Below are positions 14,042 through 64,000 of a DNA stretch of 64,000 nucleotides, in pieces. Source of the DNA: Macrostomum lignano (taxonomy: Eukaryota); contig NIVC01003958.1 in NCBI GenBank assembly GCA_002269645.1, positions 1-64,000 of the forward strand. The letters are read 5' to 3'. Position numbers and translations under genes: made by a program. Below the pieces are notes generated by a model. It was given only the letters and a program-made list of their open reading frames with translations. It had not been told where the DNA came from and searched no databases. The stretch's first letter is position 1. Every line of letters starts with the position of its first letter.

Positions 14042-14275
14042 GTAAGCGGCCTGTTCTGAGTGAATTTTTTGCAGTCAAATGAATCACCTTCTATCTGGCT
14101 GAATATATCTGTAAGATGGTTTGCTTAGTTGATTGCGTGTGCGCACGTTCACTAGCTCTTATGTACATTTGCTCGCTGCACAATGATAATATATAAGTGA
14201 ATGCCTTGGCGCACTGGGCAGCCAAGAGTCGGTCTACGCCTTAAGCCAATTTCTCGTTTTCGCTTGTTCTTACAT

Positions 14276-14290
14276 TGGTGGCAGCGGCGG
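14276..14290 (+). other. Primer-binding site TGGTGGCAGCGG(CGG), tRNA-Leu-like
   Basis: Directly after the 5' LTR and complementary to the ...CCGCUGCCACCA 3' end typical of eukaryotic tRNA-Leu. Confidence 0.75.
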
Positions 14291-14292
14291 CT

Positions 14293-18100: not shown

Positions 18101-19034
18101 CTACCACCCTGAAGGAGACGGCGGTTGCGAACGGATGAACCGGACACTGGTGCAGCTGCTGCGAGCATGGGTGAACGAGAATCAGCGAGACTGGGATCTT
18201 CATCTGCAGATTGCACTGATGGGCTACCGCACTTCAGTCCACAAGTCGACTGGTCAGACACCTTCGGCGATGCATTTCGGCCGGGAACTGCGACTACCAC
18301 TGGACTTGGCATACGGAGGTCTGGCGCCGGATAGGCAACGTCCTTGTGAATGGGTGGCCGAGCTGCGGAGCCGGCTGCAGACATCGCACGAAAGGGCGCG
18401 ACAAAACTTGGAGGCAGCGCAACTGCACCAGAAGGCAGCGTACGACAGGAGGTGCCACGGCGAGGCATTCAGCGAGGACGATCTGGTCTGGCTGCACAAT
18501 CCGGCGCTGAAGCGAGGCGAGAGCCGAAAATTTCATCGATGGTGGACTGGGCCATGGCGCGTTAAAAAGCAGATCTCAGACGTCACCTACCGCATTCAGC
18601 ACGAGGCCAATGCACGACGGCGAAGGGTGGTGCATTTCAATCGCATGAAGCCATGCAACACGGCCAGTCCAGCTGCAGCACCTCAATTGCAACCAGCGGC
18701 GCAACTGCACAATCCTGACGAGGACGACCTGAGATTTGACGGCGTCCCAGCCGGCGCCCCAGCCGGCGCCCCAGCCGGCGTCCCAGCCGGCGCCCCAGCC
18801 GGCGTCCCAGTCGGCGCCCCAGCCGGCGTCCCAGTCGGCGCCCCAGCCGGCGCCCGCGGCGCCCCAGCCGGCGCCCCAGTCGGCGCTCCGGTCGGCGCCC
18901 CAGCCGGCACCCCAATCGGCGCCCCGGTCGGCGCCCCTGCTGATGTTCCAGAGCATCCAGAACAGCCTGTATTGCGCCGAAGTGAGAGGGCCCGTGCCCC
19001 GCCAGAATTTTTTGGTGAAGTGTATACTCATTGA
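15072..19034 (+). CDS. pol: Pol (protease-RT-RNase H-integrase), in the -1 frame relative to gag
   Basis: LVDTG protease; LPQG...FLDD RT; DTDASG...ELLAIV...ADALSR RNase H; HHCC and D..D..E integrase; GPW motif. No internal stops. Confidence 0.96.
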   Translation: MHSEVGKLRWSGDRRGAVPQVRIPAQPVVEVSCSATGANMLVNCRILPMCVPASCLVDTGCSQSLMSSSLFRKLNERLLPLTTPVQLKLADGNYLAACGWQEVQLSFGVATVRQRVLVVDNLAKDFLLGADFLANCGCVIDCSRQTLTVCGQQVKMESSAASSCVFAVEVADRTTVPAGHEIVFPARLASESDAAVDGECGIFEPDNSKDISTVMCGARSLSVLRGGLIAVHYVNTDTKPHTFYPGTRLGTFEPMSDGADAELSMQAETVKGQIAEYVPNVHIDEKNLTANQVQCVKDLLHQYQDVFSKSPNDLGCTSLLDHKIDTGSAKPIRVPPRRLSPPNQRAVSEMVEQMVRDDIVEPSNSPWSSPVILVKKKDGSLRFVNDFRLLNSVTVKDSHPLPHTSDLIDALAGSTMFSTLDFTSGYTQVMLDSESRAKTAFPAPQGLFQYKRLPQGVCNGPATFSRLMELVLKGLRWEVCLSFLDDVVIFSKGFEEHLRRLELVLQKFRTANLKLKPTKCHLCYQEISFLGFRISKDGVTTDPDKVKAVQEWPTPEDRSEVRQFLGLCGYYRHFVKNYSEIAEPLYKLTQKDVTFSWTLECSAAFNRLKQCLTSSPVLIMPTFAEDAEFVLDTDASGVAISGVLQERRGGRTQVVAYGSRILSKAERNYCTTRRELLAIVHFVGHYRSYLLGKRFTLRTDHASLIHLLRFRDPDGQLARWLDKLSEFDYQTEYRKGEKHGNADALSRRPCRKGPCLCSGSALAVEFNDDSAIRRAQAEDQCMQKLANCLRDGQPPDKAETDGWSNRQRQLLSEFKRLTLVNGLLCRRWESEDGSAFCQQLLVPESLQRDVFVEAHAGTSGSHCGPQKTIEKIRARLYWPGMTADVTDWCAACLECATLKDSGQHRRAPLQSMAVGSVGQRLEMDFMVGLPRTDRGNSVILVVIDTFSKWTEAFPLPSQDAETTARTFVNEWVARFGVPQSVHTDQGRNWESQLFQETMRLLKIDKTRTTGYHPEGDGGCERMNRTLVQLLRAWVNENQRDWDLHLQIALMGYRTSVHKSTGQTPSAMHFGRELRLPLDLAYGGLAPDRQRPCEWVAELRSRLQTSHERARQNLEAAQLHQKAAYDRRCHGEAFSEDDLVWLHNPALKRGESRKFHRWWTGPWRVKKQISDVTYRIQHEANARRRRVVHFNRMKPCNTASPAAAPQLQPAAQLHNPDEDDLRFDGVPAGAPAGAPAGVPAGAPAGVPVGAPAGVPVGAPAGARGAPAGAPVGAPVGAPAGTPIGAPVGAPADVPEHPEQPVLRRSERARAPPEFFGEVYTH

Positions 19035-25185: not shown

Positions 25186-30164
<4,979 letters not shown>

Positions 30165-32699: not shown

Positions 32700-34535
32700 A
32701 ACTTTCTGCCGGCCAGAGTAAATCAAATTCCATGGCTAAATTGGTAGTATCCGTTCTTGCCGGATAAGGTAAGCACTGCTTACCATGAGTATTCTAGGTT
32801 TTCTTGTTTTCTGACAATTATAGGCGTTGCATTCTACATTCTTAATTGTTTCGTCAGTAACGTTCCTTAGTGCTTTGGTTCAAAAACACAACTTTTGTTC
32901 GAAGAGGCTTCATTAAAGTTTGAAATCAAATTTACTAATAACAGAGTTAAACAACAAAAACGAGAATGAAAAACCTGATAATATTCTGGCTGATCAAACT
33001 TACTGCGCATACAGAACGTACGGCTCGTGCACTACAGAAACTATAACTAGTGAAACTAATATAAATTATCAAGAGTTGTGAACTAATTTGAGCTAAAGAC
33101 AAAAGGCAAAAACAGTAAACAGAATGGATGAAAACTTTAGTTTTAGCGGAAAGTGAGTCCATTCTGCCGATGCTCGTACTTCAACGCTGCGAATGCCAGC
33201 GTTGAAAGCAATCTAACAAACAAAGTCCCGGGCATCCTGGACATCGGCTGCAGAAATAAACTGTGCGCCGGGAACTGGCAGAACTGTAGCACATTCTGCA
33301 CCTTTTCGTAGGTCTGGGCTGGGTAGGACGACCTGGGATTTTCTCCGGAAAATGCTGCTCAGGGACTGCAACTGTTTGCAGCATGGAAGCCGGTCGCTTC
33401 CTGCCATTTCCAGTTCGCTCTACCAAATCACGGATGCTGGCTTCGAGATATCTGATAAAAGTATTCTGGCCACCACACTTGCAGTACAGAACCCAAGCGT
33501 TGCGCACCATTTAAAGGCACATATGCAAACCCAGCTTGTGGAACCATTTTGTTGTCTTTCTGCTGGCATCATAGGGCTGCAGGGGTGCCGTCCAGCGTGT
33601 CCACTCCACCGCTGTGCATCGTCTGTGCTCCAGTAGTCATGTAGCTCGGACTTTTTGTTCAGGCCCATGTACAGGTGCATGCCGACTAGCTTTTTCAGCT
33701 CGCTTGCGGTGCAGTCCCGCCAGCTAGATACAATGGACGGAAGGACATCCGTCTCAGGATCCAGCTCCATCAGCATGGTGGCCACCTTGGCGTTTGTCCA
33801 TTCAGCGAGGCATTGGAAAAGCTCTTCAGAAAGAAACATTTGTAAAAATAAAGACTTATCCTTCTCAACATCCTCAGGAATTAAAAAGTTCGGATTTAGG
33901 CCAGCAGTTCCGGTAAATTCAAAACATTCTGTCCCTTCATCGGACCCAGGCTCGACAAGTCGCCAAACATTCTCAACTACAGCAGCATCGCCATCTGCAA
34001 ACTCCTGTTCTTCCTCGCCGTCAGGCCCTTCTATGGTTGGAGGATTGCCATCCAGTGCTTCTTCGCCAACCTCCTCGCCAGGCTCCTCGTCTATTGTTAA
34101 GTAGGAGTCGAGGCTTGCTTCACTATCAGAGGTCATGTAGTCGATCTCAGAGGCAGAAGCCACGTACTTTAGGATATCAGTGAGTAAATACTGTGTCAAA
34201 TTTAGCGAGAAAAGGCTAACAAACAAGTTGGTAAGAGTGTTACTGTAAGAAAGCTATTTTACTACAAAGGGAACTTGCTGTCTGAGCACAGATTTCTAAG
34301 GTAAGCAGCGCATACCAAGCAGGCAGCAAGTGAAACTGTTTTATTGGCTAAATCAGTAGTGCTGTTCATTTCCTTCCCATCTAGCACGTCAGTTTGAGCC
34401 AAGCTGGATCAGTAAGCCTAGCCGGCAGGAATGGAAGTGACATGCTATGCCAGAAATTATCTATGGTAAGCACTGCTTACCAAGCAGTCGGGAACAGACA
34501 AATTATGGATTCTGGTTAGCCAGGAAGAGGCTCTA
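32700..34535 (-). mobile_element. Internally deleted piggyBac relic (ends approximate)
   Basis: Acidic N-terminus and LFLQMFLSEE...WTN...ELKKLVG...MGL...DYWS, joined directly to GGVD..D and the C-terminal Cys-rich domain (CRMC...C..C...LC...CF..WH). Frameshift and a TAA at 33513-33511. TIRs not resolved. Confidence 0.8.
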
Positions 34536-35879: not shown

Positions 35880-36073
35880 CTTTGTCCAACTCGGAATATC
35901 CCAACCGTTATTCCGACTGATTATTAAATACATTGCAAGTCTAAATATCATTCCGACTCTTATTTTGACTGATTATTAAATACATTGCAATGATTGGATG
36001 ATACTTAGACTATTTCTAGAATAACCGCATTACGAGCTGGAATAATGGTCGGAATATTCTGAGTTGGACAAAG
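35880..36073. mobile_element. MITE with 35-bp terminal inverted repeats
   Basis: 35880-35914 versus the reverse complement of 36039-36073: 31/35 identical, all four differences are transitions. Confidence 0.75.
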
Positions 36074-37633
36074 TGTAAAAGGTCATACAAAACCATAAGC
36101 CTACATAAATATTATACTAAAAAATCAAGATATTCTATTTTAATTTTAGGCCAATGCTAAAGCCTTTGGCAAAGGCAAAGCCAAAAATTAAGATAAGTAA
36201 TTTAGGAATATATAGCCTTAGGCCTAGGCTTAGGCCTAATAAATTGCCTAGGCCTACTAGCTAATAGCACTACTCACTTTACTAGGCTTAGTAGGCCTAG
36301 TGCTTTGTTTGATAAAAATGCACTCTTAGAGACAGTTGTCTCCTAAGGCTAAACTAAAAATTTAATTGATCTCTACTGCAAACTTTGTACACATTTAACA
36401 CATAGGCCTAATATACCAGATTAAAATATATACATGGCTAGAAATAGGATAGGGACTAAGGAGCCTACAATACAATGTCAATATACTATAAAATAAACAT
36501 AAAAATAAAAGCTAATATTAAATTAAAACTAATATAAAATAAAAGTAGGAAAAACTTGACTTTTTACTAATATTTTAACTAATATAATATAACAATTTTA
36601 TTTAACTAATTTCTAAGTCCAATATGGTCATTTTGTAGCTTTTTAAAGCCTATTTTATTTATTGATAAAAAATCTAATATAGTTTGAAAGGTTAGGCTAA
36701 GATATAAAATATTGGGTTTTTATCTTATAGGTCTAATGATAAAGTAATTAAAAAATCATTTTTGTTTAATTTTAAAAATATAGGAGCCTTTAATTTTTGT
36801 AAGTATTACTTTTAGGCCTAGTTCTTTTTATATTTATTTGTCTCTTTAATGAAAAAGATAATATAGTTTTTTATTGTAATAAAGGCAAAAAGCTAGATAT
36901 ATTTATAAAAACTTTTTTCCTTTTCTTTTTAGTTTATATTACTTCTATATTATATAACTTCTATTTCTAATTATATTACTTCTATATTGCTTTTTAGCCT
37001 ATAAGGGAAAGAACAAGCAAATGCATAACAATCCTAATATCTTCTATAAAAGCAACAGATTAAAAAAGTAAATCAATGAATTCAAATACCTAGATGTATC
37101 ATCTTCAAACCCAGTAATAACTCTAAAAGATACATTGCCCATCAGATCAAATAAGGATAATAATTCTACAATGTTTTAACTATTACATAAAGTCAAAGAT
37201 ACCACAGTCCACACTAGACATCATGCTTATCAGTAGACTATTTAATTCTTGGGTCATATAAGTTATAACGTATGGTTATGAAATCTAGGGACCTTTAGCA
37301 ACCTATATTTATCTCAAAACCATTGACAAAATTCTAAAATTTCCATAAATACCTTCTTTACTTATCTAAAATCACTTGCAACTCTTTTATACTTGCAAAA
37401 CTCAATTTAACACTTATCTCACTTACCATCTTGAATTTTTTCTTATATATTTCTTATATTATATTTCTTATATATATAAGAAATATATTTTAAAATAAAA
37501 ATATTTTAATTTTATACAACCCCTGGAAAGTAAGGCCCAAACAACCCTTAGAAAGTGAACCTCCTTAAAAAACTACAAAACCTAGGTTTATCTTATGCTT
37601 GGGCGCAACCTGTTTGTTGCCAATAGAAATGGC

Positions 37634-38278
37634 CAAGTGATTCCCAAGGTTGCGCATATATGCCCTATAGGAAAAAGTTGTAAAACCGCGGATGGTGTCC
37701 GGCGCACTTTTGAAATTTTTCTAAAGCGCAGCGCACGCACAGGCGCAGCGCCTGCGCACGCTGCCCTTTCTTACTGGCTGCTGCTCTAGCAAATACATAT
37801 ACATGGAAATGGGTATAATACCTCTGTTGCAGGGGCTTATACACTCGTAATTTATTAAGCTTAGAGATGTTCCGAAAATTCAATTTCAATTTTCCAAAAT
37901 TTGAAATTTTTTAGGGAGCAAATTTCAATTTCGAAATAAAATTTAGAAGTGAAAATTTTGGTAGTGTCTAAAAAGTCGCTAAAAATAAACTACTTTCTAC
38001 TACATATACATGTATTACTTTTTGCTTAAGCAGTAAATTGAAAGTAAAAAAGTGAGTGTTGATCATACTAAACTTTGTTTTTCTGAATTATGATTTTGGG
38101 AAATTTCAATTTTGATTTAGGAAAGTTAGCAAATTTTGATTTCGACGAAACTGCAGATCTTCCGGAACATCTCTAATAATCCTAAAGCGCGGTAAAATAG
38201 TTTGACTCTTTTCTAAAGCGCGCGTCCGCGGGTTTTTAACATTTATTCCAATAGGGCATATATGGTTTATCTCACTTG
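37634..38278. mobile_element. MITE-like element (TIR core CATATATGCCCTAT.GGAA) containing a hAT-like MITE
   Basis: 37655-37693 is inverted at about 38225-38264. Inner pair TAGAGATGTTCCG (37862) and CGGAACATCTCTA (to 38175) resembles hAT TAGRGATG ends. TSDs not convincing. Confidence 0.6.
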
Positions 38279-41200
38279 CATATACAAACATTAAACCCTG
38301 GAGACAATTATAAAAAACAAAGCAATAATAACAAAACAAGTATATATCTCTTGGGAGCACAAACATTTCAAAAAATAGAAAACTACATAAAAGTTAGGCA
38401 TTACAAAAATTGCTTTATGTATAAGAATATTTTTAGGCCTGATATAAAAAACTACTTCCCAAGTACTTTTAGAAGAAAAATACCTAGAAATCCTGCTAAA
38501 GCTTAAAACCAAGTTTGTACCAAACAAGTATACCCAAGAAAATGCAAACTTTTTGTCAAATATTCAGGAAATAAAATATTACACTATGTAGTTGAATATG
38601 CTGTTATACTAAATATCAGAAAAAAAGTATTTTAGACAAAGCCAATTGAGCACAGGGCATTTCTACAGCTTAGGCTATGCTATAAATGAAAGCAAAACTA
38701 AAAAAGACCTGCTAGCTATTGTAAAGATTTATAAACTCATAAATAATCTTCATTCTTCTTTTACAACCAACATGAAAAGGTAGACAATACCCTGTATATA
38801 CTACTCTATTATTACTTTTCTTATATCAATCAAATCCATTATGTTGGACTTCCCAAAGCTAGATACTCCCTTTTGCTATATCTCCTTTCATATATCTGCA
38901 AAATAGAATTAGTATATTATATCTTTTGATATACTATATTACCCCCTTTTCATTTTTTAATAAGGATTGGATAATAAAATAGTGGATCATAAGACAAAAA
39001 ATGCCTAAATCTTCATGTTTGTATAATTTTTAAAATTACATTAGCAGTGCAACTTAGAATAGTTTTGAACAAAAATACTCATTTTGCAACTTACTTGAAT
39101 CTCTAATCTTTTATACAACTTGTTTAATTCTTTGTAACTTAGTGTATTCTTTTCATTATGCTTTTTACTTTATTTTGCCTTTTCAATTTTGCTTCTTTGC
39201 CTTATTTTTTAGATACCTAGATAAAGACAACTCATTTTTAGTGTAATGAGTATATTGTATATATAATAAATATGTCAAAGTTATATATCAAAGTTTTAGC
39301 ATTAAAACTAAAAATATTTTGTTACATTGCCCAAATTCAAGTTAAAGAAATATGGTTCAATAAAATGCTACTGTCTTATTGCCTTTTCATATGTTGTATT
39401 TGTTAAAATGTTTTTTTACATTAAAATATTTTTCCCTTTTCATGTTTTTGTGTATAAACTTTATATGCCTATGTTTTTTATTCCTTTGGCATATAATATA
39501 ATATGGTATAAATCTAGAAAAGTCCAAATTTTTAAACAGAAGCTTAGCATTGTTTTAATTATTCTTTAAATAAGTGTGACTTATATTTAAACTTTTAAGA
39601 AATTTTACCTTAATTGATTTTTAAGTTTTAGGGTTTGCTTATATGCAGTATATACCTTTGCTAGCTAAAAGCTTTTTTATTTCTTTATCAAATTCTAAAA
39701 AATGATTTTTAATTGATAAAGTAGGCCTAGCATTTATATTAATTTGCCATTTTTATATATTAGTTACATAATATAATATTGCAAGCTATGATGATTTCAA
39801 TAAACATTAAATCTACAAATGTTATCAAAGTATTTATTCTAACAAATTTATCACTGCTTTATAAGCTAGTGTCCTTTTTAAGATGTGTATATATACTCTT
39901 TATTACTAATAGTAGTAATATATGTTGTAGGGCTTACTTCTGTCCTCCAACTATCCCACTATTGCCACCAAAGTTGTCACAGGGCTGATTCCTCTGTTCT
40001 GGAAATCTCAGCCGCTGATACCAAAGTTGTGCTAGGTTTTCAATTTTCCTCTGCTGATACTAAATTCTGCCTTTGGTATCTCTAACTGTTTCTTAGAATT
40101 TAATTTAAATATACTGGTAGCGTCTTATGTATTAATCTGGTAGCGTTCTTAGTATAGTCTGGTAGCGTTCTTAGTATATTAGTCTGGTAGCATTCTTAGT
40201 ATATGGCCTGAGCGGTCTTACTGGTATATGTACTTTCTCTTTCCAGTCTGGGCGTTACCGAGATTAGAGGGTCACAGCGATCACTCTTAGTACTTTCTTT
40301 GCATGAATCCCTGATTCCCAACTCTCAATACCTCTTTAAAATAAGCAATGATCTGAGAATAAGTATTGAACAACGTTTTGAGCTTATAGCTATCGAACGA
40401 GTTATACTTCCATCCCTTCGGCTCTCTCCTATTTATACTAATCAATCGCGTATATTTAAAACAAACTCTTACAACTTGAGAATATTTCGCGTATTATAAC
40501 AAAAGAATATTAATTTTCGCGCTAGTTCAAAAACAATAATTCCTAGAAATAAGGTACCGCTACTACATATATAAATATATTAAGGTTTAAGTTAAGTCCA
40601 GGTAAATAATTAACTACTCTTATATAATCTATGATTTGATTAGCACTAGGCTCTAAGCCATTTAAGTTGTCTACTAAGTATTAGTTATTTATTAGTTTAT
40701 TTATTTCCTGGATCTGCCCTAATGCAACTAAGTTTTTTCTTTTTTTATAGCTGATAGAATATTCTAATTGAGAATTGAGATGCTTTAAATGTTTGAGCTT
40801 AAGTAGTATATACTGTTTTAGTAACATTGTAATTTAATTTAATATTGTATTTTAAAATTTTCTGAATTGCTTATACTCAAATGCAACCAATTTTCAGGTT
40901 GATCACATGTGATTTAAGTCAATTTTAGTTTTAGGATTAAATTAATCTTGTCAGCATTTATAGTTTTTATTTTCTATATTTTTTAATTTATAAATACCTT
41001 TCCATTACTTAACTTTGTGATATAATAATTAATAATTAATAATATAATTTATTATATAAATAGTAGCACAAATCTGATTAAAATCAATAAAAGATACCAC
41101 AAAGCACTTGTGCTGACTTCGACTGATATGATTCATAGGATATATTTCCATAAAAAAACTTTATCCCCTCAAGTGTTTAAGGGAATACAGAATTGGAGTT

Positions 41201-51689: not shown

Positions 51690-52030
51690 CAGTTGCTATG
51701 CAGTTGCTATGCAGTTTCTATGCGGTTGCTACGCTCTTGCTATGTAGTTGCTACGCAGTTGCTACGCAGTTGCTACCCAGTTGCTACGCAGTTGCTATGC
51801 AGTTGCTATGCAGTTTCTATGCGGTTGCTACGCTCTTGCTATGTAGTTGCTACGCAGTTGCTACGCAGTTGCTACCCAGTTGCTACGCAGTTGCTATGCA
51901 GTTGCTACGCAGGTGGTACGTAGTTTCTATGCGGTTGCTACGCGGGTTGCTCTGCCGTCGCAATATAGTTTCTACATAGTTACTATGCAGTTGTCACATA
52001 AAGGTCACGCAGTTGCTATGCAGTTGCTAA
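51690..52030. repeat. Degenerate 11-bp repeat GTTGCTA(C/T)GCA
   Basis: Direct reading. Confidence 0.85.
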
Positions 52031-52679
52031 GCGGATAGTAAGCAGTTGCTACACGCCGAACCTAAGATGTGCAATGGCCCCACCAGCCCCAGCCCCAATT
52101 TTTTTACTTGTTTTCGTTGTCTCAAGCAGGCACACTTTTACTTTAGCCTAGGCATTTGTTATTTTATTTTCTACGGTAAGGCTTCGCCACTGCCAAGCAG
52201 TTTGCAACAGTCCCATGATTGGCAGCTTTTCAATGTTTATCGCCCAGCTGCAGTTCGCAATTGCCTGTGCTTCATCATCATCATTTGTTCTGTTCAAATC
52301 GCTATTATTAATTGTTGTCACTTTTTCCCCATCAATTTGTCACCCCCTGAGGCGCCTCGGATCAACCAGCGAGTTTTTCATCTCCCAACTTTTCATTCCC
52401 TCCCAGATACTTCAGTGAATTGATTGCGCAATTCAGCGCCTCAACTATTTGAATATTTTGTCTCATTGTTGTCTCCCAGCCAGCTTCCGACCGCTTCAGT
52501 TTCTATTCTTTATAGCTACAATGGTATTTCAGCAAATACAGACGAATCAGCCACGAATCGACAATCCCGAAGTATTTTACGTTTCAGAAATTGACGGCTT
52601 GTACTTTTCATTTTCTATTTTGTAGATTAGCTATGAGATTAACTCATTGTTCGGGTACTTGTTTTGCTATGTGGGGATT

Positions 52680-53510
52680 CAGTGAGCTCCCATCCCCTCC
52701 CTGATCCTTCAGTGAGCTCCCCCCATGATCCTTCAGTGAGCTCCCCCCTGATCCTTCAGTGAGCTCCCTCCCTGATCCTTCAGTGAGCTCCCTCCCTGAT
52801 CCTTCAGTGAGCTCCCCCCTGATCCTTCAGTGAGCTCCCTCCCTGATCCTTCAGTGAGCTCCCTCCCTGATCCTTCAGTGAGCTCCCTCCCTGATCCTTC
52901 AGTGAGCTCCCTCCCTGATCCTTCAGTGAGCTCCCTCCCTGATCCTTCAGTGAGCTCCCTCCCTGATCCTTCAGTGAGCTCCCTCCCTGATCCTTCAGTG
53001 AGCTCCCTCCCTGATCCTTCAGTGAGCTCTCTCCCTAAACAGTGAGCTGAGTCCCTGCTGATCCTTCAGTGAGCTCCCTCCCTGATCCTTCAGTGAGCTC
53101 CCCCCATGATCCTTCAGTGAGCTCCCTCCCTGATCCTTCTGTGAGCTCCCCCATGATCCTTCAGTGAGCTCCCTCCCTGATCCTTCAGTGAGCTCCCTCC
53201 CTGATCCTTCAGTGAGCTCCCCCCATGATCCTTCAGTGAGCTCCCTCCCTGATCCTTCAGTGAGCTCCCTCCCTGATCCTTCAGTGAGCTCCCTCCCTGA
53301 TCCTTCAGTGAGCTCCCTCCCTGATCCTTCAGTGAGCTCCCTCCCTGATCCTTCAGTGAGCTCCCTCCCTGATCCTTCCGTGAGCTCTCTCCCTAAACAG
53401 TGAGCTGAGTCCCTGCTGATCCTTTAGTGAGCTCCCTCCCTAAACAGTGAGCTGAGTCCCTGATCCTTCAGTAAGCTCCCTTCCTGATCCTTCCGTGAGC
53501 TCCCAGCCAC
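52680..53510. repeat. 24-bp minisatellite GATCCTTCAGTGAGCTCCCTCCCT
   Basis: Direct reading; 8-aa periodic ORFs. Confidence 0.95.
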
Positions 53511-54044
53511 TCCCTGAATTCCCGATGGCAATGATGAGGCAGTGATGCAGCTGGAATAGTTTTAGTCAGCGGCTTCAACTGCTTTGGCGAGGCTTTCAAC
53601 CATTGCAAACTGCTCGGCTAAGACTCGAGTACCTGAGCTGCTATCAGATTAAACTGCAACTGACTATTTCGAGGCTGGCGATGATTTATGCCAGCTTGAG
53701 CAGCACTGAGTGGCTTCTTCTTAAGCAGCTCCGATAAGGTTTGCTGCATCTCTCGATAAAAAAGCTTTGCCCACACAGCGTAATACTCGTAAATCAATTT
53801 TTGTTCAGAGTTCAGACGCTGCATAGGAACAGAACTTTTATTGTACTAGTGAGGTCACGCTCCCAAGCTAGGTTTAAGGTCTTCATCTGGGGCATCTGGG
53901 TTCTGCTGATTAAGCAGATGAAGCTGAAATACGAGTAGCTTGCCCCGTGTATCACAAAAAAATTAATAAATTGCCATCATGCTACTTATCTGCATTGGAG
54001 CGTAGTAGTAGAGATAATCAATTTGCTTTTCTCTAGAACCTTCA

Positions 54045-55225
54045 CTGGGTTCTCATTCCCTCTCTGATCCCTTACTGGGTTTTTATTCCCTCTCTGATCC
54101 CTTACTGGGTTTTTATTCCCTCTCTGATCCCACTGGGTTTTTATTCCCTCCCTGATCCTCACTGGGTTCTCATTCCCTCCCTTGATCCTCACGGGGTTCT
54201 CATTCCCTCCTTTGATGCTCACTGGGTTCTCATTCCCTCCCTGATCCCTCACTGGATTCTCATTCCCTCCATGATCCCTCACTGGATTCTCATTCCCTCC
54301 CTCATCCCTCACTGGATTCTCATTCCCTCCCTTGATCCTCACTGGATTCTCATTCCCTCCCTGATCCCTCACTGGATTCTCATTCCCTCCCTCATCCCTC
54401 ACTGGATTCTCATTCCCTCCCTCATCCCTCACTGGATTCTCATTCCCTCCCTCACCCCTCACTGGATTCTCATTCCCTCCCTCATCCCTCACTGGGTTCT
54501 CATTCCCTCCCTCATCCCTCACTGGGTTCTCATTCCCTCCCTCATCCCTCACTGGGTTCTCATTCCCTCCCTCATCCCTCACTGGATTCTCATTCCCTCC
54601 CTCATCCCTCACTGGGTTTCATTCCCTCCCTCATCCCTCACTGGGTTCTCATTCCCTCCTTCATCCCTCACTGGGTTCTCATTCCCTCCCTCATCCCTCA
54701 CTGGGTTCTCATTCCCTCCCTCATCCCTCACTGGATTCTCATTCCCTCCCTCATCCCTCACTGGGTTCTCATTCCCTCCCTCATCCCTCACTGGATTCTC
54801 ATTCCCTCCCTCATCCCTCACTGGGTTTTCATTCCCTCCCTCATCCCTCACTGGGTTCTCATTCCCTCCTCATCCCTCACTGGGTTCTCATTCCCTCCCT
54901 CATCCCTCACTGGGTTCTCATTCCCTCCCTCATCCCTCACTGGGTTCTCATTCCCTCCCTTGATCCTCACTGGATTCTCATTCCCTCCCTTGATCCTCAC
55001 TGGATTCTCATTCCCTCCCTTGATCCTCACTGGATTCTCATCCCTCCCTGATCCTCACTGGATTCTCATTCCCTCCCTTGATCCTCACTGGTTCTCATTC
55101 CCTCCCTTGATCCTCACTGGATTCTCATTCCCTCCCTTGATCCTCACTGGGTTCTCATTCCCTCCTTTGATCCTCACTGGGCTCTCATTCCCTCACTGAT
55201 TCCTCACTGGGCTCTCATTCCTTCA
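54045..55225. repeat. About 30-bp minisatellite CACTGG(A/G)TTCTCATTCCCTCCCTCATCCCT
   Basis: Direct reading; 10-aa periodic ORFs. Confidence 0.95.
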
Positions 55226-55269
55226 TTCATCCTTCGGTGTTCAGCCACCCTTATATCCTTTAGTATTCC

Positions 55270-55535
55270 CTTCACCTGACCATTGCCCTCACCTGACCAT
55301 TGCCCTCATCTGACCATTGCCCTCACTGACTATTGCCCTCACCTGACCATTGCCCTCACCTGACCATTGCCCTCACCTGACCATTGCCCTCATCTGACCA
55401 TTGCCCTCACCTGACCATTGCCCTCACCTGACCATTGCCCTCATCTGACCATTGCCCTCACCTGACCATTGCCCTCACCTGACCATTGCCCTCACCTGAC
55501 CATTGCCCTCACCTGACCATTGCCCTCACCTGACT
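55270..55535. repeat. 17-bp minisatellite TGACCATTGCCCTCACC
   Basis: Direct reading. Ends just before a TTTCAG acceptor-like site upstream of the PDP ATG. Confidence 0.9.
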
Positions 55536-55587
55536 GATTTCAGCGCCCCCGCACATTCTCCACTATCGCGTCCGCTGCCGCCTCGCC

Positions 55588-55823
55588 ATGACGATTCGGC
55601 GAGCGGCCGCTCGTCCCGCGTGGCTTCGCCGCTGGCTGCACGCGGCTGCTGGGCTGCGCCATGCGGAGGTCATCAGCGGCAACCAGCAGTTCCCCCTCAT
55701 CAGCCCGCAGCAGGTGCGCCAGCTGCTGCGCCAGGGAGCCGAGCGGCACACGGCTGACGTGGCCGGCTGGCAGGTCTCCGTGCACTGCAACCAGGTGCCC
55801 TGCAACCGGCCCGTGGAGGACAG
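55588..55823 (+). CDS. PDP: Pyruvate dehydrogenase phosphatase catalytic subunit (PPM family), exon 1 with a mitochondrial-type presequence
   Basis: Arg/Ala-rich N-terminus lacking acidic residues, then ISPQQVRQLLR...NQVPCNRPVEDR, matching PDP NQLxxNxPIEDR. Confidence 0.9.
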
Positions 55824-55874
55824 GTGACGGCTGGTCTTGGTTTCACTTGAAATTTCTTTCAATTTGTGCGTCTC

Positions 55875-56320
55875 CTGACTCAACTGCCACTCGTGGGTCA
55901 CCTGACTCAACTGCCACTCGTGGGTCACCTGACTCAACTGCCACTCGTGGGTCACCTGACTCAACTGCCACTCGTGGGTCACCTGACTCAACTGCCACTC
56001 GTGGGTCACCTGACTCAACTGCCACTCGTGGGTCACCTGACTCAACTGCCACTCGTGGGTCACCTGACTCAAATGCCACTAGCGGGTCACCTGACTCAAC
56101 TGCCACTCGTGGGTCACCTGACTCAACTGCCACTCGTGGGTCACCTGACTCGAATGGCACTCGTGGGTCACCTGACTCGAATGCCACTCGTGGGTCACCT
56201 GACTCAACTGCCACTAGCGGGTCACCTGACTCAACTGCCACTAGCGGGTCACCTGACTCAAATGCCACTAGCGCGGTCACCTGACTCGAATGCCACTCGT
56301 GGGTCACCTGACTCAACTGC
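55875..56320. repeat. 27-bp intronic minisatellite TGACTCAACTGCCACTCGTGGGTCACC
   Basis: Direct reading. Confidence 0.95.
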
Positions 56321-56332
56321 CCCAATCTCCAG

Positions 56333-56597
56333 ACTGGCCGTCAGCCGCCTGCTGATTGGGCCTCCCGTGCAGTCGCAGGACGGTCCGCTGCTTGTCGGCG
56401 TCTTCGACGGGCACGCAGGACCCGCGTGCGCGAACTCCGTGCACCTGCGCCTGCCCGACTACCTGGCCGTGGCCATGGCCGACCCGCTGCGCCTGCACGA
56501 CATCAAGGTGGCCGGACAGGCCCTCAGTCTCAACATTGCCAGGCTGCCCCACGGCCCGGAACTCGAGGAGGAGCTCGGCCGGCTGCACGACCAGCAG
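56333..56597 (+). CDS. PDP: PDP exon 2
   Basis: LVGVFDGHAGPAC is the PPM motif. Phases consistent. Confidence 0.92.
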
Positions 56598-56659
56598 GTG
56601 CTGCGCCTGTTGTCATAGCAACTTACTAGCAACGCTCTGTCGCTGTTCTTCATTTTTAA

Positions 56660-57310
56660 CTACACCAGCCTGCTGGATTCTTCGCTCCCTACCGCAAATC
56701 CTGTGCTGGATTCACCGCTCCGCAAATCCTGTGCTGGATTCTCCGCTCCGCAAATCCTGTGCTGGATTCTCCGCTCCCTACCGCAAATCCTGTGCTGGAT
56801 TCTCCGCTCCCTACCGCAAATCCTGTGCTGGATTCTCCGCTCCCTACCGCAAATCCTGTGCTGGATTCTCCGCTCCCTACCGCAAATCCTGTGCTGGATT
56901 CTCCGCTCCCTACCGCAAATCCTGTGCTGGATTCTCCGCTCCCTACCGCAAATCCTGTGCTGGATTCTCCGCTCCCTACCGCAAATCCTGTGCTGGATTC
57001 ACCGCTCCGCAAATCCTGTGCTGGATTCTCCGCTCCCTACCGCAAATCCTGTGCTGGATTCTCCGCTCCCTACCGCCCCATCCTGTGCTGGATTCTCCAC
57101 TCCCTACCGCAAATCCTGTGCTGGATTCTCCGCTCCCTACCGCAAATCCTGTGCTGGATTCTCCACTCCCTACCGCCCCATCCTGTGCTGGATTCTCCAC
57201 TCCCTACCGCAAATCCTGTGCTGGATTCTCCGCTCCCTACCGCCCCATCCTGTGCTGGATTCTCCGCTCCCTACCGCAAATCCTGTGCTGGATTCTCCGC
57301 TCCCTACCGG
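56660..57310. repeat. 33-bp intronic minisatellite CCTGTGCTGGATTCTCCGCTCCCTACCGCAAAT
   Basis: Direct reading. Confidence 0.95.
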
Positions 57311-57380
57311 CTCCTCGAATTCCACTCTCCCTCTGCTTTCGCCCCTCCCCTCTTTAACCAGCCAGCCACCCGTACCGCAG

Positions 57381-57938
57381 CTGTCCGCCTTCACCTCGGA
57401 GACGCTGTCCATGAGCGAGCCGGAGCCGCTCGGCCACCGCCTGCGGGAGGCCATGCAGCGCCTCGACACGGACATCGGCGAGGCTGCGCAGCCCCGGCCA
57501 GGCGCCGCTGGCCTCAACCGCGCGCTGCTCCGCGTGGCGCTGTCCGGCTGCGTGGGCACCGTGGCGCTGCTGGAGCCGCCCGACCGCCTCCACGTGCTGC
57601 ACGTTGGCGACTGCGCCGCCGTCCTCGGCCGCTGCCACGACCAGCTGTGGTACGCGCACAAGCTCACCGAAGAGCACCGAGCCGACAATCCCGCCGAGCT
57701 CGAGCGCCTCATGCGCTCCCATCCGGTCAGCGAGCGCGACTTCCTTGTCCGCTACGACCGCCTGCTCGGCGAGCTCATGCCGCTGCGCGCGTTCGGCGAC
57801 ATTCGCTACAAGTGGAGCGCCGACCTGCTGCGCACCGCCGGCCGCCTGCTGCAGCTGCCCGCCACCTACAACCCCGTGCCGCAGTACTACTACACCCCGC
57901 CTTACCTCACCGCCGAGCCCGACTTCGCCACGCAGCAG
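57381..57938 (+). CDS. PDP: PDP exon 3
   Basis: VALSGC, GDCAAVLG, RLLGELMPLRAFGDIRYKWS and YYTPPYLTAEP are PDP-specific motifs. Confidence 0.95.
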
Positions 57939-57949
57939 GTGACCTACGC

Positions 57950-58750
57950 TCATGTGACCCCCTCCTCTAATGTGACCCCCTCCTCTAATGTGACCCCCTC
58001 CGCTCATGTGACCCCCTCCTCTAATGTGACCCCCTCCTCTAATGTGAATCCCCCTCTAATGTGGTCCCCTCCGCTCATGTGACCCCCTCTAATGTGGTCC
58101 CCTCCGCTCATGTGACCCCCTCTAATGTGACCCCCTCGGCTCATGTGACCCCTCCTCTAATGTGACCCCCTCCTCTAATGTGACCCCCTCCGCTCATGTG
58201 ACCCCCTCCTCTAATGTGACACCCTCCTCTAATGTGAATCCCCCTCTAATGTGGTCCCCTCCGCTCATGTGACCCCCTCTAATGTGACCCCCTCCTCTAA
58301 TGTGACCCCCTCCGCTCATGTGACCCCCTCCTCTAATGTGACACCCTCCTCTAATGTGAATCCCCCTCTAATGTGAATCCCCCTCTAATGTGGTCCCCTC
58401 CGCTCATGTGACCCCCTCTAATGTGACCCCCTCCTCTAATGTGACCCCCTCCGCTCATGTGACCCCCTCCTCTAATGTGACACCCTCCTCTAATGTGAAT
58501 CCCCCTCTAATGTGGTCCCCTCCGCTCATGTGACCCCCTCTAATGTGACCCCCTGCTCTAATGTGAACCCCTCTAATGTGACCCCCTCCGCTCATGTGAC
58601 CCCCTCTAATGTGACCCCCTGCTCTAATGTGAATCCCTCCGCTCGTGTGACCCCCTCCTCTAAAACCCCTCCGCTCGTGACCCCTCCTCTAATGTGAACC
58701 CCTCCGCTCATGTGACCCCCTCCACTATGTCCTCCACTCATGTGACCCAT
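57950..58750. repeat. About 18-bp intronic minisatellite TGTGACCCCCTCC(TCTAA/GCTCA)
   Basis: Direct reading. Confidence 0.95.
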
Positions 58751-58776
58751 GTGTCTGCTGCTCCCCATCCTGGCAG

Positions 58777-59118
58777 ATTACAGGCGACGACCGGTTCCTC
58801 ATCCTGGCCTCCGACGGCCTGTGGGACCACCTGCCGCCCGAGGACGCTGTCGCCATTGTCGGAGCCGCCATCGACAGCGGCGCCTTCGGCATCGGCGGAG
58901 GCGGCGGCAGCAGCGGCAGCGACGCGGAAGAAGTCACGGAGAGCGGGCGCAGCGGCGCCAACCTTGCCACGCTGCTGGTGCGGGCGGCGCTGGGCGGGCA
59001 GAAGCGGGGAGACTCGGAGCCCTCGGAGGCGATGATCACCCAGCTGCTGTCGGCGCCAGCCAACGTGGCCAGGTACTACAGGGACGACATCACCGTGGCA
59101 GTGCTGCTGCTGCACTGA
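58777..59118 (+). CDS. PDP: PDP terminal exon
   Basis: DRFLILASDGLWD, N(L)ATLLVRAALG, ARYYRDDITV. The four exons total 1401 nt (466 aa plus stop). Confidence 0.95.
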   Translation: MTGDDRFLILASDGLWDHLPPEDAVAIVGAAIDSGAFGIGGGGGSSGSDAEEVTESGRSGANLATLLVRAALGGQKRGDSEPSEAMITQLLSAPANVARYYRDDITVAVLLLH

Positions 59119-59218
59119 CGCAAGTTGTTTTCGTGCCATTAACCTGCGTATTGACAGAAACTGTTGTAAAGTGAGCATTCACATCCAAAGCTTTGTTTTC
59201 AATTCAATTGATTGCTCC

Positions 59219-60057
59219 GCTGGTCTCTACTGACAGTAGTTTCGGGTGAAAACAACAGCCTATTTACAGTCTCTGCTGGTCTCTACTGACAGTAGTTTCG
59301 GGTGAAAACAACAGCCTATTTACAGTCTCTGCTGGTCTCTACTGACAGTAGTTTCGGGTGAAAACAACAGCCTATTTACAGTCTCTGCTGGTCTCTACTG
59401 ACAGTAGTTTCGGGTGAAAACAACAGCCTATTTACAGTCTCTGCTGGTCTCTACTGACAGTAGTTTCGGGTGAAAACAACAGCCTATTTACAGTCTCTGC
59501 TGGTCTCTACTGACAGTAGTTTCGGGTGAAAACAACAGCCTTTTTACAGTCTCTGCTGGTCTCTACTGACAGTAGTTTCGGGTGAAAACAACAGCCTATT
59601 TACAGTCTCTGCTGGTCTCTACTGACAGTAGTTTCGGGTGAAAACAACAGCCTATTTACAGTCTCTGCTGGTCTCTACTGACAGTAGTTTCGGGTGAAAA
59701 CAACAGCCTATTTACAGTCTCTGCTGGTCTCTACTGACAGTAGTTTCGGGTGAAAACAACAGCCTATTTACAGTCTCTGCTGGTCTCTACTGACAGTAGT
59801 TTCGGGTGAAAACAACAGCCTTTTTACAGTCTCTGCTGGTCTCTACTGACAGTAGTTTCGGGTGAAAACAACAGCCTTTTTACAGTCTCTGCTGGTCTCT
59901 ACTGACAGTAGTTTCGGGTGAGACAACAGCCTTTTTACAGTCTCTGCTGGTCTCTACTGACAGTAGTTTCGGGTGAGAACAACAGCCTTTTTACAGTCTC
60001 TGCTGGTCTCTACTGACAGTAGTTTCGGGTGAAAACAACAGCCTATTTACAGTCTCT
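59219..60057. repeat. 56-bp minisatellite, about 15 copies, with internal palindrome CTACTG-A-CAGTAG
   Basis: Direct reading; near-identical units and no spacers. Confidence 0.95.
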
Positions 60058-61920
60058 CCAAGATTTCAATTCACACCAAAAAGGCAGGTTGGCGCCGGCT
60101 CTTCGAAACGAATAAATAATCTGCTCGCTCTCCGTTGCCACCCCGGCGCTCTGGCAAGGATTTGCTAAGAAGGATTTCCCCCTTTGTGCTTCTCTGCTTT
60201 CCTGTAATTTTTTTTTCACGTGCTCGCTAATCTCCTTAGCTATTCGAGGCTGGAATTCTGTATCCGGCTGCCTTGAATTTTGTCTGCTTTTTAGTTGCTT
60301 TTAGAGCAGCGGAGGCACTCGGCTGATTGCCGCCCCCCCGCAGAGGCCCCTGGGCCCGCACTCTGTCTGATAACTTTGCTTTATTAGCAACTTACCTAAT
60401 TGTCCAACGCGGGGTCAGCTCTCTGTGTGCTCACGCTGACTCTCAGTTCTCTCATACTGCTGGAAGTAGCCTGTCCGCTATGTTCCAGTGCCAGCCGCCT
60501 GCTAAAGTACAGATAACATCTTCACAGCAGTCTGTAATGTGTTGCCTGCATTGCTCATGTGCGCTGCCTGTTTTATAACTGTAAGTCTGCTCTGTCCGCC
60601 TACCCGCCTGTTCGTCTCATTCATTTTGTCTGCCGGCATGAAATTAATAAATTAAAAAAAATGAAATATTAAAAATTCTTGTTTCTAGCTTGAAGATCCA
60701 TATTTTAAATGCAATAAATGCTAATTTGAGCAATAAAATTGTCTTGACTGATTATTTTACTAAGAGAGAGTTCATAGCCCGAGGCAAGGGTCAATTAGAG
60801 AAATCTCTCTACCCATTAGTCTGCGGGGGCTTCCCATCAGCGTCAGTTCTATTTTTTTCTGTACAGCCGGGGTCGCACCGGTTTTGGCCTGTATTGTTGC
60901 TATTCAATAGGTGCTGTGCGGCGGCACTGTGCTTTATGCTCACTCAGTTCCAAGTTGTGACGTCCAATGCAAAAATAGACACTTCAGGCACTCGGCTCGG
61001 TCGTCTGTGAGCGCTCTTAGATGGAGCTACGCTCGAACTGCTCGAACTGGTGTCTAAAATTAGATACTCGTCATGACTCGCAGTAAGATGACTCTGCCCA
61101 GCTGGCTGGCAGGCCCCATCACCCGCGCCGAGTCTCACTCGGGTGCTGCTGACGCTGCAGTCGCCCTGCCGGCGAGGACAGGCGCAAACTCTGCGTTTCG
61201 TCGAATGACTGGGAGGGAAATTCAGGCAGCTCAACTGAAAACGCGTCATTTGGGGTTGGTTTGTGCCCGAAAATCGACCGGTGGCTGTCTTGCGATTCAC
61301 GCCAATGAGGGCCAGGTCACAAGGCACAGAACACATGCCTTACGATTAGAAAGTCAAGAGCCGCCGTACACCCTGTGTGAGCGAGTGCATGGGTGCGTGC
61401 TTGCGTACAGTATTAGCGGCCCTTGTATGTGCTCAGGAGTCAGCGGAATGGGCAGAATTGCCCCAGCGTACTGGTTGCGAGCCGGTGTCGCTGAAGGCGT
61501 TGCGCCTTGGAGCCCGCAGCCCCTCCTGCAGCAACATGTTAATGACGCCGCTCTGCGTCAGTTGATGCTCGCGCAACGGCTTAGTTAACAAGGCCTGAGT
61601 TCCATACAGACAAACTTTGCCTTCTCTTTTTAGTTGCACTGACACCGTTTGGACGGCAGCTTCTAGTGGGTGTGTGGGTGCAATTTGGTTCGTGGGTGCA
61701 AATTTCCATGTTGAACTCAAATTCAGCAAAATGTTTCGGGTTGTCAGAGATGACAGGATTTGACAACATTTTGACATTGTATTTTAGATTAATAGCGGTA
61801 GAGAAGACGAAACGGATTAGGGAATAGTACAAGTGAGATTGTGAGTCAAATCGCAGCCTCTGCAGCTGCATCTCGCAGGTGTTCAAGTTTATTTTTAACT
61901 CTCCAAAACAAATATTTGAG

Positions 61921-62819
61921 TCAGCGACGTCTCCACGAGTCCTGCGCAGCTCCCGCCCACTGCTGCCGCCCGCCCATGGTGACGTTGAGCCTGTTGTCGT
62001 CCCCGACGATGTTGAGCAGGCCTCCGTTCTGGTTCACCCCGCCGCAGTCCAGCAGGTCGGCTTCGCTGCCGCCGGCCTCCCTCCCCAGTCTGGACCGCGG
62101 GCCGCACGCCTCGACCGTCTGCTCGGTTCGCAGGCTGGCCATCGAGTTCCATCGGCCGTTGGGCTGGTGCTCGGGCCGGCAGAGCCGCAGCTCCGGCTGG
62201 GCCGCCGACTCCGCGGTGTTGACAGTCGCCGGATTCGCCCCGGCGCTGCTTCTGGCCGGCGGAATCGGCATCTGCCGGAACTCCCAGAACAGCGACTTCA
62301 GCTCCGCCAGGGCGAAACGCCGCGGCTTTGTCTCAACGCAGCTGAGCAGCTCCGCCTCCCTCTCCAGCAGCTCCTGCCGGGACTTCACTTTCCTCCGCTC
62401 CAGAAACTTCACGAGCTGCCGGTCCGTGTTGGCCGCCTTCAGCGAGTTTCTCCAGCGCTTCTTCGCCGGCTTTTCTTCGAGGGCCTCCTCCCAGCCGCTG
62501 CTGTAGGCGCTCTCGCCGCGGTTCCAAAGCTTGGCGTTGTCCAGCACCTTCAGGAGCTCGTTGTGGGAGAAGCGCTGCCTCCGAGACCCGGCTCGGTCGA
62601 TGATGCTCTTGCGATGCTCGACCAGCTGCTGCACATCCGTGACCTGCTGCACCTCGATGAAGTAGTCCGCAGGCACCTGCGCGTTTTTTGTCTCTTAAAA
62701 AAGGTCACGAGATCCTGGCTGACCGGCCGGCTGCCGATTTCCGCATAGCCGCTCTCGCCTGAGACCCGCGGCAGTTGCGGGTTTCTGAGGCGGACTGGAA
62801 AATCGCTCAGTTCGGACAT
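61921..62819 (-). CDS. Unknown intronless protein A (about 299 aa); one A apparently missing at 62684-62689
   Basis: ORF 62550..62819 (MSELSDF...FKRQK) joins ORF 61921..62676 when one base is added to the run. Strong GC3 bias. The exact C-terminus is uncertain. Confidence 0.65.
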
Positions 62820-63104
62820 GATCGCCGAGATGGTTCGCTGCTTGGCTACGTGGCGGTTCTGAGTCTTGGCTGGCTGGCTGCTTCGTCATATTTTTATATC
62901 TTGGGTTCATTCCGCATTATAGTGCCTCCCCCTAAAATATCTGTGACTAATAATACCCTCTAAGTGGGCTTTTGTTGTCACAATGTACAGTGCAGACTCG
63001 TGCACAATGCCCGGCATAATTTTGTATATTTAAAATAGAGCTGGCAGACAGATGCGCCTCCATAGTTTTGCCCAGAACCGCCGCTTCATCCAAGCAGCTC
63101 AGAG

Positions 63105-64000
63105 ATGAGTGACGTGAGTAGGGCGATTCAGTCCTGGCAGGGCGACGCGCGGGTGAAGAAGTTCATCATCAAGTCCTGCCCGAAGGGCGACAGCCTCGGC
63201 CAGTTCCTCCGGGATGAGAATCTGCGAAGTCTCAACAAGAAAATTGCCAAACAGAAAAATGCGAAATTCGCTATTAAAGATGTTGACGCGCGCTGTGAAC
63301 CATCTCAGGGACAGCTGGGCTGCCAAGATGTCGCAAGCCGCACGAGCGGAGCCGGGCTACGATAGCCTCGCCGAATCCGGCGGCCGAGCGGAGTCGGGCT
63401 ACGATAGCCTCGCCGAATCCCCCTGCCGCAGCTCAGCCTCTGAAGCCAGCGCCACCCAGACTTGCAGAAGCGTCTCCTCTCTGGCCAACCGGCCGCTGCC
63501 GCCAGTGCCATCAGAGCGGCGGGACTCCGACCGCGGCTACCAGACTCAGTCAGGCAGCCTGTCTGATGAGGACTCGCAGGCTGCCGGAGCTGCAGCAGCC
63601 CTAGCTGCGACCGCGGAGCCGAGCGTCCAGCCTCCGCGGCCGCAGCCGAGACGCTCTGCAGTCAGGGTGAGTCACAATGATGCCGCGAGCAGCTCCTGCG
63701 GTGCCGCCGAGGCTGCCGAGCAGCTGGTGGCGGACTCTGAGCAGGACTCGGCTGGCCGCACCTGGTCGGAGGCCGCGGCAGTCAGAGCTCCGCAGCCCCG
63801 GCCGCGGCTCAGCTTGGCCCGTCGTTCCAGCGAGACTCGTGGCGGCGATGACGCGTCCAGCCTCTCGGGACCCGCCGCCACCGCTGCGGCCCCGCCATCG
63901 AGCGGTCGACGCCGGTCTGCCAGAACGGCTTCTTCAACATCCACGGCGGCAAAAACGAGATCGATGTCGACCTGGAGGCTGTGAAAATGTTGATGGACTT
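63105..64000 (+). CDS. Unknown protein B, divergent from A, running off the window; two frame changes (near 63290 and between 63667 and 63897)
   Basis: ATG at 63105. Coding-like segments in successive frames; the last (…IERSTPVCQNGFFNIHGGKNEIDVDL…) has very strong GC3 bias. Confidence 0.55.

Follow-up and report, generated by a model that had tools for sequence, protein, structure and literature searches.

Among described systems, those closest to the locus analyzed here are the RHIM (for RIP homotypic interaction motif; Pfam PF12721) of RIPK1, RIPK3, TRIF, and ZBP1, the invertebrate cRHIM, and the motifs of NOD-like receptor (NLR)-associated amyloid signalling in fungi (HRAM, sigma, PP) and bacteria (BASS). 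The RHIM has the core tetrad (V/I)-Q-(V/I/L/C)-G (PMC13506858; PMC12119088), with a strictly conserved Gly and a C-terminal extension made up of Asn, a variable residue, and an apolar residue (PMC4262963). The cRHIM, known from Drosophila (PGRP-LC/LE, IMD, and Pirk) and from shrimp (SRB2 and IMD), lies in disordered cytoplasmic stretches of invertebrate proteins and conserves only the fourth-position Gly: IMD-pathway proteins carry VxxG, VHIG, ARNG, and LHFG cores, of which VHIG and ARNG are functional (PMC10268257). The core pattern of the fungal PP motif is NxGxQxGxN (PMC9815663), and in NLR-associated amyloid signalling the same motif is found at the C-terminus of the effector and at the N-terminus of the neighbouring NLR (PMC13506858). 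The present analysis concerns positions 1-64000 (hereafter, the window) of the Macrostomum lignano contig NIVC01003958.1 (67,539 bp; assembly GCA_002269645.1, Mlig_3_7), where two divergent genes, A and B, encode a common C-terminal motif. In a sequence-only reading, this motif had been described as RHIM-like and the two genes as a candidate amyloid-signalling module.

Based on reading frames, layout, and sequence similarity, A and B are members of a four-gene M. lignano family (A-D). As judged from BLASTP and hhalign comparisons, the four genes are local paralogs: a single ancestor was duplicated locally, and one inversion occurred, in agreement with an earlier caveat that A and B could be an old inverted duplication. 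A is encoded on the minus strand; B, C, and D are plus-strand genes, the last two of which lie just past the window end. The cluster is present in three loci: the window contig, on which L002 denotes the stretch that includes C and D; NIVC01000020.1 (L001), a homeolog or diverged duplicate with ~94% nucleotide identity to the window cluster; and NIVC01004833.1 (L003), a redundant contig with 99.5% identity over 12 kb that is collinear with window positions 51960-64000. The genes are arranged as follows.

62819-61921, minus strand: gene A, single-exon coding sequence from the ATG at 62819 to the stop codon at 61921-61923; 299 aa once a 1-nt gap at 62667 is filled
62820-63104: A/B spacer, 285 bp between the divergent ATGs (from the start codon positions); presumed shared bidirectional promoter
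63105 to past 64000, plus strand: gene B, single-exon coding sequence from the ATG at 63105 to the stop codon at contig positions 64011-64013; 302 aa
L002 11400-13640 (contig 64.6-66.9 kb), L001 6227-8277, and L003 5967-8205, same strand as B: genes C (229-244 aa) and D (275-307 aa), found as open reading frames (ORFs) that end in the motif

The divergent starts of A and B had been placed 285 bp apart, which agrees with these coordinates, and the same arrangement is kept in L001 with ~250 bp between the ATGs; presumably, the two genes share a bidirectional promoter in the spacer and are co-regulated. Downstream of B, at contig ~64.6-66.9 kb, C and D are two more single-exon genes, and B, C, and D are separated by a few hundred bp each. 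M. lignano uses spliced leader trans-splicing, so that B, C, and D could be co-transcribed. B extends 13 nt beyond the window end, and its C-terminus reads ...VDLEAVKMLMDFKSK*. Read past position 64000, B thus ends shortly after the motif, which is in frame in the intact copies (302 aa in L003; 287 aa in L001, hereafter B', label P0002), and the deposited B' protein includes it. With position 62667 filled, the window A protein is identical to GenBank PAA46496.1 (BOX15_Mlig016461g3; label P0007), which is intact on L003. The A ORF as it stands in the window (61921-62676, minus strand) has a single database relative, an M. lignano hypothetical protein. On the opposite strand, window positions 61841-62748 hold 221- and 289-aa ORFs antisense to A, which we read as by-products of GC-rich coding sequence and not as genes.

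The four proteins share one layout, the parts of which are located in A and B as follows.

63105-63330, plus strand: N-terminal helical domain of B, WQGDxxVKKFI...HLRDSW, common to C and D (BLASTP, hhalign, AlphaFold2)
63331-63408, plus strand: 45-bp tandem duplication (63331-63375) in B, giving two G-Y-D-S-L-A-E-S elements (EPGYDS, 63349-63366; ESGYDS, 63391-63408)
63490-63510, plus strand: RPLPPVP (RxxPxxP) in B, by pattern match
63912-63974, plus strand: C-terminal motif of B, PVCQNGFFNIHGGKNEIDVDL, ending 12 residues ahead of the stop codon; in frame in L001 and L003
62497-62756, minus strand: region of A with two [DE]S[GA]Y elements (ESGYAE, 62756-62739; ESAYSS, 62514-62497)
62040-61975, minus strand: C-terminal motif of A, GVNQNGGLLNIVGDDNRLNVTM, ending 17 residues ahead of the stop codon

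B and C are clear paralogs over their N-terminal ~90 residues (BLASTP E = 3e-14), and D aligns with a B/C profile along 87 columns (hhalign E = 4e-5). For A, the comparison with the N-terminal domain of B, C, and D returned two collinear weak matches (hhalign E = 0.11 and 0.34), which imply an insertion of ~27 residues in the A domain; the weakly alignable stretch is included in the region 62497-62756 listed above. The order of elements is identical in A-D: the N-terminal domain is directly followed by a tyrosine-containing [DE][ST][GA]-Y-x-[SE] element, then by a low-complexity linker that contains RxxPxxP (found in 4/4 paralogs by pattern search), and finally by the C-terminal motif. The linkers differ in composition, being Ser/Ala-rich in B, made of GSAA repeats in C and of AEAAK repeats and poly-Pro in D, and rich in charged helices in A. 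The view that A and B are dissimilar outside the motif is therefore not upheld, because they have in common the helical N-terminal domain (weak in A), the Tyr element, RxxPxxP, and a disordered linker. The 94%-identical homeolog of B has a single GYDSLAES element compared to two in the window copy. We take the [DE]SG-Y-x-S form of this element to resemble a beta-TrCP-type DSGxxS phosphodegron and a YxxL phosphotyrosine site, and RPLPPVP of B has the RxxPxxP pattern of class I SH3 ligands and is presumably compatible with an adaptor-like role.

The C-terminal motif follows the pattern [VW]-x-Q-[NS]-G-h-h-N-[IV]-x-G-x4-h-x-V (h, apolar residue), spans ~20 residues, and ends 2-17 residues from the C-terminus. 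Its presence in both A and B had been recognized from shorter cores, corresponding to the last 14 residues of GVNQNGGLLNIVGDDNRLNVTM (62016-61975) and the last 15 residues of PVCQNGFFNIHGGKNEIDVDL (63930-63974); both sequences and their reading frames are confirmed here. The motif recurs in C and D at the same C-terminal position in all three loci, with C carrying RWRQSG-VINISIKCPVQLQ... near its terminus and D ending in RVRQSGAINIVGHRTSIAVRD*. When A-D are aligned over their full length with MAFFT, the motifs line up, and Q, G, N, and I are the sole invariant C-terminal columns. Using Smith-Waterman alignments of the last 45 residues, with each pair tested against 2000 shuffles, we obtained a score of 37 for A-B (shuffle mean: 17.4), which was reached by 0/2000 shuffles. 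C-D likewise exceeded 2000/2000 shuffles and A-D all but one (p <= 5e-4 for the three pairs), B-D was borderline (p = 0.05), and A-C and B-C were not significant. A loose motif pattern, composed after the motifs had been seen, matched only A and B in the six frames of the 64-kb window. At conserved motif residues, the paralogs use differing synonymous codons (GGA/GGC/GGT; AAC/AAT; GTG/GTC), which argues for conservation at the protein level and not for recent gene conversion. By direct count, motif identity is ~44% for each pair (A-B: ~9/21; A-D: 8/18; B-D: 8/18). By these counts, A-B similarity is not above that of A-D or B-D, so that co-evolution specific to the A/B pair is not supported.

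Relatives of the family were found only within M. lignano. Searches of 5.8 billion clustered proteins, 1.84 billion cluster representatives, Pfam, and PDB returned none from outside this species, with other Macrostomum species apparently unrepresented in these collections. The exhaustive profile search of the 1.84 billion representatives recovered the family itself and one spurious bacterial match only (P0005, a cadherin-repeat protein), which is rejected as a relative because it matches the low-complexity part of the profile. PDB sequence searches with the family proteins gave nothing meaningful, and no viral or metagenomic relatives were found in scans of viral and metagenome contigs. AlphaFold2, run without an alignment, placed 4-5 helices in the N-terminal domain of B (pLDDT 70-89) and left the remainder, including the motif, disordered; a Foldseek search of this domain model against PDB found no similar solved fold (best E = 1.7). 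The model of A was poor (mean pLDDT 42) and contained a strand-turn-strand-turn-strand meander exactly on the motif, its turns falling at NQNGG and GDDN. This low-confidence meander agrees with a beta-hairpin or beta-arch propensity of the A motif, without being evidence for one. Hydropathy within the tail peaks at the h-h-N-I-h core in A, C, and D. The family gene IDs were not found in full-text literature or in the supplements of M. lignano papers; there appears to be no published description of the family, its motif, or its layout, and the proteins are deposited only as "hypothetical".

The reading that we favor, with a confidence a little above even, is that A-D form a M. lignano-specific family of local paralogs encoding disordered adaptor-like proteins that inherited a beta-prone C-terminal binding element. 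The four genes would carry the motif because they descend from one ancestor, which would have been duplicated locally, with one inversion, to give A, B, C, and D; the linkers would then have diverged beyond recognition and the C-terminal motif been kept. Retention of the motif next to such linkers argues for a functional module, most likely a short beta-strand-forming binding element by which the proteins may attach to a shared partner, to their own N-terminal domain, or to one another. In several respects, the family resembles taxonomically restricted tandem families of disordered adaptor-like proteins: it consists of intronless local paralogs with no outside homologues, its low-complexity linkers evolve fast, and its conserved islands are small (the Tyr element, RxxPxxP, and the C-terminal motif). 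It differs from them in its C-terminal island, which is longer (~20 residues) and richer in G/N/Q than most catalogued linear motifs and has no match to any motif class tested. Inspection by eye ruled out reading this island as a PIP-box, LIR, clathrin-box, LC8, or PDZ ligand, as A-D do not conserve the residues that these would require. An h-h-x-h core of the SUMO-interaction kind is seen in A, C, and D, whereas B does not fit it.

Several observations weigh against this reading. Whole-protein BLASTP between A and B is not significant (E = 17), and the place of A in the N-terminal domain family rests on weak scores. Profiles built from 2-4 motif copies fail to cross-detect other paralogs (best non-self match: D, E = 1-5), and copy C is without the second Gly and without the N-x-h part. 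Homeolog ratios of nonsynonymous to synonymous substitution rates (dN/dS) range from 0.27-0.88, and no added constraint on the motif is visible at this short time scale with its few substitutions; the region-wise values for A and for the pooled set are inflated by a wrong-base repair of the homeolog A', making the separate A estimate the better one. A ~20-residue G/N/Q-rich stretch with alternating hydrophobics exceeds the typical length of a linear motif and resembles amyloid-signalling motifs.

The sequence-only reading put forward an alternative, in which neighbouring genes encode proteins that co-polymerise by way of a RHIM/cRHIM-like beta-arch at the C-terminus, giving a functional amyloid that works as a signalling switch. 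We consider this unlikely. Like the RHIM, the family motif is a ~20-residue non-globular segment with a conserved Gly in a disordered region; it lies near a terminus, its flanks are disordered and Pro-rich, and its conserved Gly, Asn, and Gln are accompanied by alternating apolar residues. In A and B only, the conserved Gly is followed by x-x-N-x-apolar-x-apolar. This G-x-x-N-x-h-x-h pattern matches the RHIM Gly and its Asn-variable-apolar extension (PMC4262963); it is present in A, B, and B' and absent in C, C' (the C copy in L001), and D, which has G-H-R-T-S-I-A-V at this place. Unlike in the RHIM, the family Gln is part of [NCR]-Q-[NS]-G, and the tetrad at the second Gly is N-I-[VH]-G. As had been cautioned for NIVG and NIHG, the tetrads are non-canonical: a regular expression search found no (V/I)-Q-(V/I/L/C)-G in A, B, B', C, C', or D, the nearest sequences being NQNG, CQNG, RQSG, NIVG, and NIHG. 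Comparison with the RHIM hidden Markov model gave no support, as hmmscan against Pfam-A at E <= 10, with HMMER filters that lose most matches above E ~0.1, matched neither PF12721 nor any other Pfam model to the full proteins or to the isolated motif peptides. Similarly, a motif profile compared to PDB sequences matched nothing, RHIM chains included.

The invertebrate cRHIM is more permissive, and its degenerate x-x-x-G cores in disordered regions leave room for NIVG and NIHG (PMC10268257). Both fit the fourth-Gly rule trivially, and the rule is too loose to discriminate. The M. lignano carriers differ from cRHIM proteins in having no known link to the IMD pathway, and no PGRP, death, or receptor domain (scavenger-receptor included) was found in them by Pfam search.

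With the fungal HRAM, sigma, and PP motifs and bacterial BASS, the locus shares adjacent genes that encode a common G/N/Q-rich motif C-terminal to a helical N-terminal domain, a layout that recalls HeLo/BASS effectors (PMC13506858). It differs in that there is no NLR partner with an N-terminal motif, the carriers are four paralogs of the same architecture, and NxGxQxGxN is absent from all motif copies (regular expression search). The motif is C-terminal in 4/4 carriers, so the opposite-end arrangement of effector and NLR is not found; such uniform architecture, with every carrier having the motif at its C-terminal end, is a signature of paralogy and not of a sensor/effector pair. Further carriers of the motif, which had been proposed as a search for partner domains, do exist in the adjacent C and D, but none of them has a kinase, TIR, NACHT, or death-fold domain. 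More broadly, no NLR, NACHT, NB-ARC, TIR, kinase, or death-fold domain was found in the proteins or in the window, L001, L002, and L003, where a PP2C gene, transposons, and satellites neighbour the cluster; kinase, death domain, TIR, and Z-alpha contexts, as known for RHIM proteins, are lacking in the family. HET-s-type and SesB-type Pfam families had no match in the family proteins, and no HeLo, HELL, SesA, SesB, PNP_UDP, TIR, or BELL effector domain was detected beside the motif (Pfam, Foldseek, and PDB sequences). In contrast to HeLo- and BELL-like effectors, the N-terminal domain shows no detectable similarity to HeLo or to a solved fold (no Foldseek match), and it does not adjoin the motif, from which it is separated by a linker of 130-190 residues. 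Positive support for the amyloid model is limited to composition and pattern, with the low-confidence AlphaFold2 meander on the A motif being compatible with it; the ~44% identity between the A and B motifs, not above that of the other pairs, speaks against it as well. No result here shows the motif to be a RHIM or to form amyloid.

A variant that retains the whole family is also rather improbable, namely that a degenerate RHIM/cRHIM-like beta-arch co-assembles the paralogs into an amyloid platform, which the Tyr/degron-like and RxxPxxP elements of the linker would regulate. If true, such a platform would represent amyloid signalling in Platyhelminthes without an NLR, RIP kinase, or death-fold component.

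It is similarly doubtful that the likeness of the motifs is a neutral relic of common ancestry, or partly due to chance in a G/N-rich tail, with no specific function. The insignificant A-B BLASTP score, the small profiles that do not cross-detect paralogs, the homeolog dN/dS of up to 0.88, and the degraded motif in C would all be consistent with such a relic. However, next to linkers that are unalignable and of differing composition, the motif stays in place and retains Q, G, N, and I; for three C-terminal pairs, at most one of 2000 shuffles reaches the observed score; and conserved residues are encoded by differing synonymous codons.

The reading frames of A and B are interrupted in the window copy at three positions.

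62667: 1-nt gap (C missing) in A, which splits A into two ORFs; base present in L003 and L001
63291: 1 extra nt (C), first false frameshift in B; by comparison with L001 and L003
63908: 1-nt gap (G missing) shortly upstream of the B motif, second false frameshift in B; by comparison with L001 and L003

Compared to L003, the 5.2-kb cluster of the window shows 1 substitution and 28 indel events, mostly single bases absent from the window, and the alignment of window positions 51960-64000 to NIVC01004833.1 over 12 kb contains 11 mismatches and 48 gap positions. ORFs are intact for 4/4 genes in L003 and 3/4 in L001. Short-read polishing performs poorly in highly duplicated regions. The Mlig_3_7 assembly was built from PacBio reads with Canu and polished with Pilon, and 180 Mb of it lies in blocks duplicated at >=95% identity (PMC5730564). 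Because the near-identical L003 has intact ORFs and differs almost only by 1-nt indels, the three frameshifts are, judged by comparison of the contigs, long-read assembly errors. The annotation is transcript-based (PMC5730564), and A, B, and C therefore have RNA support.

The earlier suggestion that B reaches its motif through a 1-nt correction was right in kind, since L001 and L003 read through, except that two errors (63291 and 63908) are involved and not one. Its alternative, an intron at 63667-63860, is ruled out: the intact single-exon ORFs in L001 and L003 translate across the whole stretch, so that B requires no intron. A frameshift of A at the poly-A/T run near 62690 was also considered and rejected, as the missing base sits at 62667 in the comparison with L001 and L003. 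That the window copies of A and B are instead decaying pseudogenes with true frameshift mutations, as three frameshifts in A and B, many more in C and D on NIVC01003958.1, and the redundant gene copies known in M. lignano (PMC5730564) might suggest, is highly improbable, because true decay would add substitutions, whereas indels far outnumber them relative to L003 (28:1 in 5.2 kb; 48:11 in 12 kb) and for the most part are losses of one base, as expected where PacBio consensus is left unpolished in a duplicated region.

The homeolog A' (L001 10028-10957) carries a 1-nt insertion at the equivalent of window position 62132. Due to this insertion, the last ~85 residues of GenBank PAA93897.1 (A') are translated in a wrong frame and the protein does not include the motif, which is intact in the DNA. 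ORFs elsewhere in the window are probably also falsely frameshifted, because 48 gaps against 11 mismatches is the indel pattern of unpolished long reads.

The remainder of the window contains the following features.

14275-19034: apparently intact Ty3/gypsy-type long terminal repeat retroelement; gag ORF (Retrotrans_gag, zf-CCHC), then a 1320-aa pol ORF with protease, reverse transcriptase, RNase H, and integrase
25186-28197, minus strand: second reverse transcriptase and RNase H ORF, 1003 aa (domain content)
33420-34226, minus strand: piggyBac-like DDE transposase fragment
~55546-59118, plus strand: PP2C phosphatase gene
52695-60057: run of minisatellite arrays (seven distinct ones, 15-45 copies each); repeat periods: 17, 18 (122 in another reading), 24, 27, 30, 33, and 56 bp

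The minisatellite arrays lie in and around the PP2C gene, and some are translated as repeats within long ORFs. At window positions 36000-40000, GC content drops to 27-29%, compared to 50-63% in the flanks.

If the motif were a self-templating beta-arch, RHIM-type amyloid signalling would reach the flatworms in a new protein context, and the amenability of M. lignano to transgenesis makes this reading directly testable. As a family of local paralogs, A-D provide a tidy case of lineage-restricted, locally duplicated disordered proteins, a kind of cluster that is ordinary in itself, in which only the small helical domain and a few short motifs are deeply conserved. The cluster is thus of use for the annotation of M. 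lignano and for the study of how orphan families evolve.

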